64,000 nucleotides of DNA, taken from the sequence record LT603033.1. One strand, written 5' to 3'. The notes below the pieces were generated by a model. The model saw nothing but the letters and a program-made list of their open reading frames with translations, had not been told where the DNA came from and did not search any database. Below are positions 15,812-15,885 of this stretch, one piece after another. The position numbers were made by a program, and so were the translations under genes. The number at the start of each line of letters is the position of its first letter. Within the stretch, counting starts at the first letter, position 1.

Positions 15812-15885
15812 TTGCACTCTTCTCTTGTAAGGAGAATGACAAAAAACTACCCGAAAGGTAGAAAGCTTGAATTAACAAGGTGCAA
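15812..15885 (+). ncRNA. tRNA-sized four-helix RNA, not a tRNA
   Basis: TTGCAC/GTGCAA closing three hairpins; occupies a slot between two tRNAs. Confidence 0.55.

Follow-up and report, generated by a model that had tools for sequence, protein, structure and literature searches.

The tRNA arrays of bacteriophages are now regarded as a means of offsetting codon mismatch and of resisting host nucleases that degrade tRNAs. In Escherichia coli, tRNA precursors are processed by RNase E or a related enzyme cutting in A/U-rich spacers, by RNase P, which makes the 5' ends, and by exonucleases that trim the 3' ends. The tRNA-processing enzymes also cut out the C4 RNAs of phages P1 and P7 and the CI RNA of P4, which are around 77-80 nucleotides (nt) long and are built of a closing stem and hairpins. 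To our knowledge, RNAs other than tRNAs that are made from phage tRNA arrays have been known since RNAs C and D of phage T4, and their function has been unexplained for fifty years. The two T4 RNAs are small stable species from the tRNA region whose function is unknown (PMC3014915). A by-product of an E. coli tRNA operon, 3'ETS-leuZ, acts as a sponge (10.1101/2021.04.25.441314). Here we describe a 74-nt unit in the DNA of Escherichia phage vB_Eco_slurp01 (LT603033.1), at positions 15812-15885 (+ strand) of the 64,000-nt stretch that was analysed (the window), which belongs among these array-derived non-tRNA RNAs, a class already known although unexplained. It represents a new, narrowly distributed RNA family, found in the 121Q-type phages of the genus Asteriusvirus, in Alcyoneusvirus and in Hallingskeid-like Erwinia phages; no paper describing it was found in the literature on 121Q- or RaK2-like phages.

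The region 15600-16000 is 100% identical to the slurp01 record, at the same coordinates, and ~99% identical to 121Q, SP27, UB and other 121Q-like jumbo phages. A first-pass annotation, made from the letters only, had seen a tRNA-sized non-tRNA between a CAT tRNA and tRNA-Asn, joined to them by linkers like those between its neighbours. This placement was confirmed, since ARAGORN and Rfam recognise a tRNA on either side, and the linkers are indeed of the neighbours' type: the CCA and AATA that precede the unit recur as CCAAATA after tRNA-Asn and tRNA-Ser(TGA). ARAGORN calls seven tRNAs in the window, none of them at 15812-15885, and positions 15808-15897 are without annotation in the deposited slurp01 record.

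The minimum-energy fold of the unit is a four-way junction, in which a closing stem (P1) encloses three hairpins. The stems that had been picked out in the first pass (TTGCAC/GTGCAA, TTCTCT/GGAGAA, CTACC/GGTAG and CTTG/CAAG) are those of the minimum-energy structure. Its loops needed correction, as the two that had been read as the 4-nt GTAA and GAAA are the 5-nt TGTAA and CGAAA, and the third is the 6-nt AATTAA. Furthermore, hairpin 1 continues with two pairs beyond a bulged U, its 3' strand reading AAGGAG-A-ATG. The fold has an energy of -18.6 kcal/mol (z = -3.29; one of 200 shuffles was equally good on the + strand), and that of the reverse strand is weaker (z = -1.96). When the 351-nt operon transcript (15630-15980) is folded as a whole, the unit forms independently between three cloverleafs. 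The same fold is the minimum-energy structure across all lineages in which the unit was found, with z from -2.4 to -3.9 for the RaK2, Muenster and Hallingskeid versions. A kissing interaction between the loops of hairpins 1 and 3 was considered and rejected; the complementary UAA and UUA on which it depends are lost in variants that read AAATAA.

Relatives were sought with the slot alone. A blastn search returned 22 phage records, of which 12 are 121Q-like Escherichia phages (99-100% identity), nine are RaK2-like Klebsiella phages of the genus Alcyoneusvirus (87-89%) and one is Erwinia phage Hallingskeid (84%). Metagenomes, scanned with a pattern, added three true contigs, two of RaK2 type (L250 and L259) and one of Hallingskeid type (L253), and gave eight chance matches; L257 is a lipoprotein signal peptide. 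There is one copy per phage genome. A covariance model (R1) built on seven sequences scores the known homologs at 72-107 bits and accepts nothing further in T4, in bacterial genomes or among viral loci with loose matches (~1.4 Mb). It accepted none of the ~240 IMG/VR loci collected with loose patterns (a 14-mer and a gapped pattern), a search with the hairpin 3/P1 pattern gave a single, unrelated locus, E. coli genomes hold no copy and the scan of bacterial genomes gave nothing real. In two relatives the element is covered by deposited 'hypothetical protein' coding sequences, at 1109-1294 (minus strand) of the RaK2 locus (L001) and 1161-1268 of the Hallingskeid locus (L002); RaK2 ORF220w, its K64-1 equivalent and Hallingskeid CDS0230, which run over the element on differing strands and in differing frames, are probably mis-annotations.

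Among these relatives the unit forms an island of conservation, shared at 80-89% identity by phages of three host genera that differ in the units flanking it. Similarity to slurp01 begins a few nt 5' of P1 and ends within ~10 nt past it. In all homologs the preceding unit ends in CCA, followed by a 4-nt linker (AATA or CACA), and an A/U-rich trailer of 8-12 nt leads to another tRNA or tRNA-like unit. The identity of these neighbours changes: slurp01 has the order tRNA(CAT), 74-nt unit, tRNA-Asn; in KP13-7 and RCIP0023 the unit and a tRNA-Asn of the same type are conserved as a single block; in Muenster the upstream CAT tRNA is interrupted by a group I intron and the downstream tRNA(GTT) is of an 84-nt long-arm type; in RaK2 both neighbours end in CCA and yet are rejected by every tRNA finder; and in Hallingskeid they are a CCA-ending unit that is not called and a tRNA-Leu. 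By comparison, the sole other stretch of the window compared for conservation, a variable 3.5-kb repeat-protein stretch, matched one Klebsiella-phage record, and Hallingskeid over 2% of its length.

Covariation among relatives was examined in a model-guided alignment of 11 distinct sequences, where 99.2% of pair cells are standard pairs; this falls to 35-52% when the 3' partners are slid by 1-3 columns. RNAalifold independently predicts the same helices. Two pairs are fully compensatory, one in hairpin 2 (U-A in seven of the 11, C-G in four) and one in hairpin 3 (C-G in nine, U-A in two). The fourth pair of P1 is U-G in eight sequences, C-G in two and U-A in one, and a 121Q-like metagenomic contig carries a C-to-T wobble state at 15815. 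Paired columns vary less than unpaired ones (9/46 against 15/34; Fisher p = 0.026), and of the nine paired columns that vary, six belong to pairs that are kept. Changes and indels cluster in the linker between hairpins 1 and 2 (J1/2) and in loop 2, which hold 11 of the 24 variable columns, whereas in hairpin 1 only three of 22 columns vary and seven of eight pairs are constant. The fold is kept in the relatives, with compensatory changes. Read on the opposite strand, the U-G pairs at the fourth position of P1, and the one that closes the hairpin 1 loop in slurp01, would become A-C mismatches; they favour the + strand as the one that folds. A frame of 17 codons, from ATG 15837 to TAA 15888 behind AAGGAG, is open in the 121Q type and in most RaK2-type copies. 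It is shifted, with the fold kept, by the A7 (OU509535) and A8 (L259) variants of the A-tract and by the Hallingskeid indels, and the shifted versions read as unrelated peptides of 8-13 residues. Since these indels break the frame and leave the fold intact, the unit is an RNA and not a peptide gene.

The slot was compared with described RNA families by covariance-model scans. In an Rfam scan of 15700-16000 at E<=10 it matched no tRNA, ribozyme, riboswitch, C4, Y-RNA or other family, nor did it match any at gathering thresholds, while the two neighbouring tRNAs scored 54-69 bits; this is consistent with a non-tRNA. The description of the unit as cloverleaf-like without D-loop, T-loop or CCA also stands, there being neither an ARAGORN call nor an Rfam tRNA match. 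The loop and end features of a tRNA are absent: the central loop has 5 nt (7 nt in the Hallingskeid lineage only) and no CCA follows P1, whereas the neighbouring tRNAs carry an encoded CCA.

The coordinates of the unit and of its operon are collected in Table 1. The promoter ends 10 nt upstream of tRNA-Ser, and all deposited features between 12.5 and 18.5 kb lie on the + strand. The counterpart of tRNA(CAT) is annotated as tRNA-Ile in ph0011. The ACT anticodon of tRNA-Ser is rare, and the PBECO4 counterpart has GCT. Two sister phages lack the unit, PBECO4 (whole genome searched) and G17 (locus searched). Both have the identical promoter sequence ahead of the array and the Ser, CAT and Asn tRNAs in the same order, the last two being joined by 4 nt, ATTA. 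This short junction shows that the unit is not needed for maturing the neighbouring tRNAs, and its absence from these phages makes it an accessory, an optional cassette of the tRNA array.

Table 1. Features of the 74-nt unit and of the operon around it (positions in the window)
Feature	Position	Strand	Basis and remarks
Putative sigma-70-type promoter, TGGACA / 17 nt / TATAAT, TG extension	15595-15623	+	11/12 consensus matches
tRNA-Ser (ACT), first unit of the operon	15634-15725	+	ARAGORN; Rfam tRNA 49.9 bits
tRNA(CAT), Met or Ile2, encoded 3' CCA	15733-15807	+	ARAGORN; Rfam tRNA 68.7 bits
5' linker AATA, between CCA and 74-nt unit	15808-15811	+	Sequence
P1, 5' strand TTGCAC	15812-15817	+	Pairs with 15880-15885
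Hairpin 1, 8-9 base pairs (bp), bulged U, YGTAA loop (TGTAA in slurp01)	15818-15839	+	Fold
J1/2 linker CAAAAAA, 7 nt	15840-15846	+	Length and sequence vary: A6, A7, A8; GACGAC-type in Hallingskeid lineage
Hairpin 2, CTACC/GGTAG, 5 bp, loop CGAAA	15847-15861	+	Loop varies, 5 or 7 nt
J2/3 linker AAAG	15862-15865	+	Fold
Hairpin 3, CTTG/CAAG, 4 bp, loop AATTAA	15866-15879	+	Fold
P1, 3' strand GTGCAA	15880-15885	+	Fold
3' trailer CTAAAATACAGA, A/U-rich, up to RNase P site of tRNA-Asn	15886-15897	+	Sequence; processing predicted
tRNA-Asn (GTT), operon unit after 74-nt unit	15898-15972	+	ARAGORN, Rfam

We consider that the best overall explanation, to which we give a probability of about one half, is a non-coding RNA that is co-transcribed with the tRNAs, released by the tRNA machinery and carried as an accessory cassette. 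Its parts are not equally secure: the structure with its conservation and covariation, the strand, the non-coding status, the single copy and the accessory distribution are shown by the present data, whereas transcription from the promoter, processing, stability and any action in trans are inferred. That the unit is a selected structured RNA appears likely, whereas its release as a discrete stable RNA is only slightly favoured. In the proposed pathway, transcription from the promoter would give a precursor containing Ser, CAT, the element and Asn. The A/U-rich AATA linker is a likely site for an endonuclease of the RNase E type, and a cut at CCA/AATA, with trimming of the CAT tRNA, would free the 5' side of the element. 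RNase P, cutting at 15898 to make the 5' end of tRNA-Asn, would free its 3' side, after which exonucleases would remove the 12-nt trailer as far as P1. The expected product is a four-way-junction RNA of 74-80 nt, without CCA and not chargeable.

Several observations count against this explanation. The sequences represent only three or four lineages, so that few independent compensatory events can be counted, and at least two compensatory pairs also arose in 152 of 500 shuffles; the pair count by itself is therefore not beyond that of shuffled sequences. The high identity could partly reflect recent horizontal transfer and not long purifying selection. The loss in PBECO4 and G17 shows that the unit is dispensable. 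Metatranscriptome contigs do span tRNA(CAT), the element and tRNA-Asn (X5 over 15727-15933 with one mismatch, and X3 over 15805-16124), but they are assembled contigs from RNA libraries, in which DNA may be present, and are silent on transcription, strand and ends. Two kinds of partner were also sought, with genome-wide searches for antisense matches, presence or absence and tRNA counts covering four phage genomes. No antisense target of at least 14 nt was found in the 121Q genome, and no protein gene held up as co-occurring with the element among 121Q open reading frames (ORFs) present in RaK2 and Hallingskeid and missing from PBECO4. The single candidate, 121Q 76509-76829, was rejected on its distribution: neither the slurp01 window nor most of the phages with the element have it, and it occurs in FelixO1-like phages. 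In that part of the array 121Q (G001, 76509-77136) is ~1 kb longer than slurp01, between tRNA-Asn and tRNA-Thr, and the insert holds a 106-aa ORF common to RaK2, FelixO1-like phages and Hallingskeid.

The unit might instead be a neutral relic without a function of its own, left by the decay of a tRNA gene or by recombination, which folds by chance and was recently exchanged between phages along with the tRNA cassette. The region abounds in tRNA-like units that are decayed or odd, such as a truncated Asn-like one and the CCA-ending non-tRNA units of RaK2, and there are mobile elements nearby, with the group I intron in Muenster and HNH endonucleases. Together with the few independent lineages and the dispensability in PBECO4 and G17, this keeps a relic in consideration. 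Against it, no residual tRNA signal is detected at E<=10, substitutions in the stems are compensatory or preserve wobble pairs, and the changes and indels are confined to one linker and one loop. The boundaries of the unit are sharp in three different flanking contexts, and 80-89% identity is retained although the flanking units are unalignable and the 3.5-kb repeat-protein stretch hardly aligns. We regard a relic as improbable.

A functional role in cis is also unlikely, and somewhat more so. The unit might be a spacer, which insulates the folding of the neighbouring tRNAs or positions the cuts of RNase E and RNase P and is then degraded; its location inside the operon with tRNA-type linkers and its autonomous fold in the precursor would suit such a role. 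In PBECO4, however, Ser is followed by a CAT tRNA of cloverleaf form and a different type of Asn tRNA, with only 4 nt between these two, and the junction in G17 is likewise 4 nt, though there the CAT tRNA is an unusual one of 90 nt. Furthermore, the neighbours change in RaK2, Muenster and Hallingskeid while the element is constant, and the near-invariant sequence of hairpin 1 is not needed for mere spacing.

An antisense regulator acting in trans in the manner of P1 C4 or P4 CI, its loops pairing with an mRNA or a host small RNA (sRNA), is a poor candidate. The design is alike, with a closing stem, exposed loops and release by tRNA enzymes; sponges derived from tRNA spacers are known in E. coli (10.1101/2021.04.25.441314); and the A-rich linker could bind Hfq. 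Against this, the slot has no Rfam C4 match and the single-stranded parts are those conserved least. The longest complementary words elsewhere in 121Q, of 12-13 nt, fall in the variable A-tract and are at chance level, short of the 14 nt sought, and the + strand of the window has no complementary word of at least 11 nt.

Still harder to sustain is the idea that the unit is a self-cleaving ribozyme of a new type, removing the 3' trailer from the tRNA ahead of it in the manner of the HDV-like theta ribozymes. Theta ribozymes lie at most 5 nt from tRNAs, often tRNA-Met (PMC10879173), and the unit begins 4 nt past the CCA of the CAT tRNA. No Rfam ribozyme family is matched at E<=10, and by inspection the four-way junction cannot be threaded onto a nested double pseudoknot: P1 closes the whole unit, nothing 3' of hairpin 1 can pair with the nucleotides before P1, and there is no partner for P1 after a short P3. 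The upstream tRNAs also have an encoded CCA and an ordinary linker, just like tRNAs without the element.

An intrinsic terminator on the minus strand, formed by the reverse complement of hairpin 2 followed by T6, is very improbable. It was matched in the scan (15861-15847 and TTTTTTG), and hairpin and T6 are present in the 121Q and RaK2 types, but there are no annotated minus-strand genes to be terminated between 12.5 and 18.5 kb, the T-run is lost in the Hallingskeid lineage where the element is kept, only 21 of the 74 conserved nt would be accounted for, and the U-G pairs favour the + strand. Finally, translation of the 17-codon frame is barely credible, for although the Shine-Dalgarno-like AAGGAG and an ATG are present, their 1-nt spacing is too short, the site is base-paired in hairpin 1 and the indels of relatives shift the frame.

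Returning to a non-coding RNA released from the array, its features limit what it could do. Without a CCA, an anticodon loop or D and T loops an adaptor role is impossible, and its compact fold is one with which it could persist as an abundant small RNA. The contrast between an invariant hairpin 1 and a freely varying linker and loop 2 suggests that hairpin 1 is recognised in a sequence-specific way. Most plausibly, hairpin 1 would be bound by a host or phage protein, which would be titrated or guided; we consider a protein partner more likely than a base-pairing one. It had been suggested at first sight that the unit could be a tRNA mimic or decoy. As it is without every tRNA-specific sequence feature, 'mimic' can refer here to topology and size only, and a decoy or sponge function is a tentative proposal that we think unlikely, though an accessory, modular distribution would fit a decoy or anti-defence role. 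A specific form of this proposal is that hairpin 1 imitates a tRNA anticodon arm, making the unit a tRNA-shaped decoy, supplied by the tRNA operon in amounts like those of tRNAs, that titrates a tRNA-Tyr-degrading defence nuclease of the retron-Eco7 PtuAB kind. PtuAB degrades tRNA-Tyr, and phage tRNA genes counter such defences and also PrrC (PMC11555353). The seven apical nt of hairpin 1 are UUGUAAG, CUGUAAG or CCGUAAG, where the anticodon loop of E. coli tRNA-Tyr is CUGUAAA; loop 2 of the Hallingskeid lineage is CCGUAAA or CCGUGAA, and none of the 121Q, PBECO4, RaK2 and Hallingskeid genomes has a tRNA-Tyr gene. Since the U of position 33 is not kept and loops of the YGUAA type are common, we think this idea very unlikely; if true, phage tRNA arrays would have their first RNA decoy that is not a tRNA.

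A second non-tRNA unit lies nearby, at 14822-15196 (+), and is a candidate for a widespread array-embedded RNA. It starts with a strong promoter (14822-14850; TTGACT, 17 nt, TATAAT), followed by ~340 nt without a convincing ORF or an Rfam match, and ends in a three-way-junction stem (~15143-15186) and a run of T9. Conservation is 98% within Asteriusvirus, PBECO4 included, and 81% in RaK2-like phages, while G17 does not have the unit. Its first half (~14852-15038) has 85-91% identity in T4-like phages of Proteus, Morganella and Shigella; in PM2, a Proteus phage, this half sits between tRNA-Gly and tRNA-Asp, starting 4 nt after CCA. A deposited coding sequence, 15062-15604, overlaps the 3' part of the unit, and its true start is probably later. 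The terminator-like combination of three-way-junction stem and T-rich run at 15143-15186 is also seen at 779-829 of the Muenster locus (L003), where it follows tRNA-Ser. One arm of this stem, AAAG-CTG-AATTAA-CAG, closely resembles hairpin 3 of the 74-nt unit (AAAG-CTTG-AATTAA-CAAG) and may be a shared module or protein-binding hairpin. A paralog at 15099-15172 was rejected, since R1 gives it only 12 bits (E = 3, not significant); the parts in common are the CCGAAAGG hairpin and the arm just described.

Other unusual units were found in the arrays of relatives. The group I intron in the CAT tRNA of Klebsiella phage Muenster (L003, 901-1149) scores 104 bits in Rfam, and the tRNA is unannotated there. 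TRNA-sized, CCA-ending units without an ARAGORN or Rfam tRNA call are present in RaK2 (L001, 1133-1199 and 1287-1352) and Hallingskeid (L002, 1133-1203). Of the two RaK2 units, the one at 1133-1199 combines a Ser-like acceptor stem with two long hairpins (z -4.7); that of Hallingskeid is matched at 75-88% in phages of Erwinia, Serratia and Kosakonia with genomes of 147-176 kb, where it is unannotated. TRNAs with a long, class II-like variable arm are the 84-nt GTT (Asn) tRNA of Muenster (L003, 1285-1368), which also occurs in phiKp_21, and the 90-nt CAT tRNA of G17 (L128, 1632-1721); an anticodon for Asn or Met on a body of the Ser/Leu type could point to charging out of the ordinary. In the window, a promoter block of TTGACT or TGGACA, AATAGTTCAGTACTG and TATAAT recurs at 14343-14370, 14822-14850, 15595-15623, 16755-16782 and elsewhere, and the promoter core TTCAGTACTGA is found also at 16503-16520 and 16621-16637, within a gene-free stretch of 400 nt (16483-16883). 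Further away, a 628-aa ORF of patchy distribution (49777-51663), labelled elsewhere as GIY-YIG, 'exonuclease ABC C subunit' or HNH endonuclease, is likely a mobile homing-endonuclease gene.

The 74-nt unit is compact, has a clear fold and is easily deleted, and sister phages supply a natural minus allele. With it and the larger non-tRNA unit nearby, the role of array-embedded non-tRNA RNAs becomes testable in E. coli. Should it turn out to act as a decoy or sponge, phage counter-defence would gain an RNA class; even if it were only a spacer, the annotation of more than 20 phage genomes would be corrected.

Comparison with known systems shows what is shared and what is not. With tRNAs (RF00005) the unit has in common its size, four-helix cloverleaf topology, position in the array and linkers; it differs in being without the D- and T-loop consensus, a 7-nt anticodon loop with U33, and a discriminator and CCA, and in having a first arm of 8-9 bp and a 7-nt linker ahead of the second. 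It differs from the C4 and CI RNAs in that it has no Rfam C4 match, no CCA-like 3' end and no complementary target in the phage genome. Theta ribozymes share the distance of at most 5 nt from a tRNA end (PMC10879173; here 4 nt after CCA), but their fold is a nested double pseudoknot, in which P1 starts at the first nucleotide, P2 closes to the 3' end, P3 is short, and there are a P4 and a catalytic C in J4/2. They are reported from gut phages of Bacteroidota and Bacillota and not from jumbo phages of Enterobacterales. Like 3'ETS-leuZ, the unit comes from a non-tRNA part of a tRNA operon; 3'ETS-leuZ, however, is a 3' trailer with a terminator and base-pairs with known sRNAs, whereas the unit is internal and highly structured. 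T4 RNA C (species 1, 139 nt) and RNA D (species 2, 119 nt) are non-tRNAs that lie in the tRNA cluster directly after tRNA-Arg, and the unit, too, is within a phage tRNA cluster and on the tRNA strand. Run with filters off on the T4 tRNA region, R1 found nothing at rnaC or rnaD, its only match (21 bits) being inside segB. Both T4 RNAs are longer than the unit, which is tRNA-sized, forms a four-way junction and lies between tRNAs, and RNA C ends in a canonical T-arm-like hairpin that the unit does not have. Without being homologous to it, RNAs C and D of T4 are the closest in kind to the 74-nt unit.

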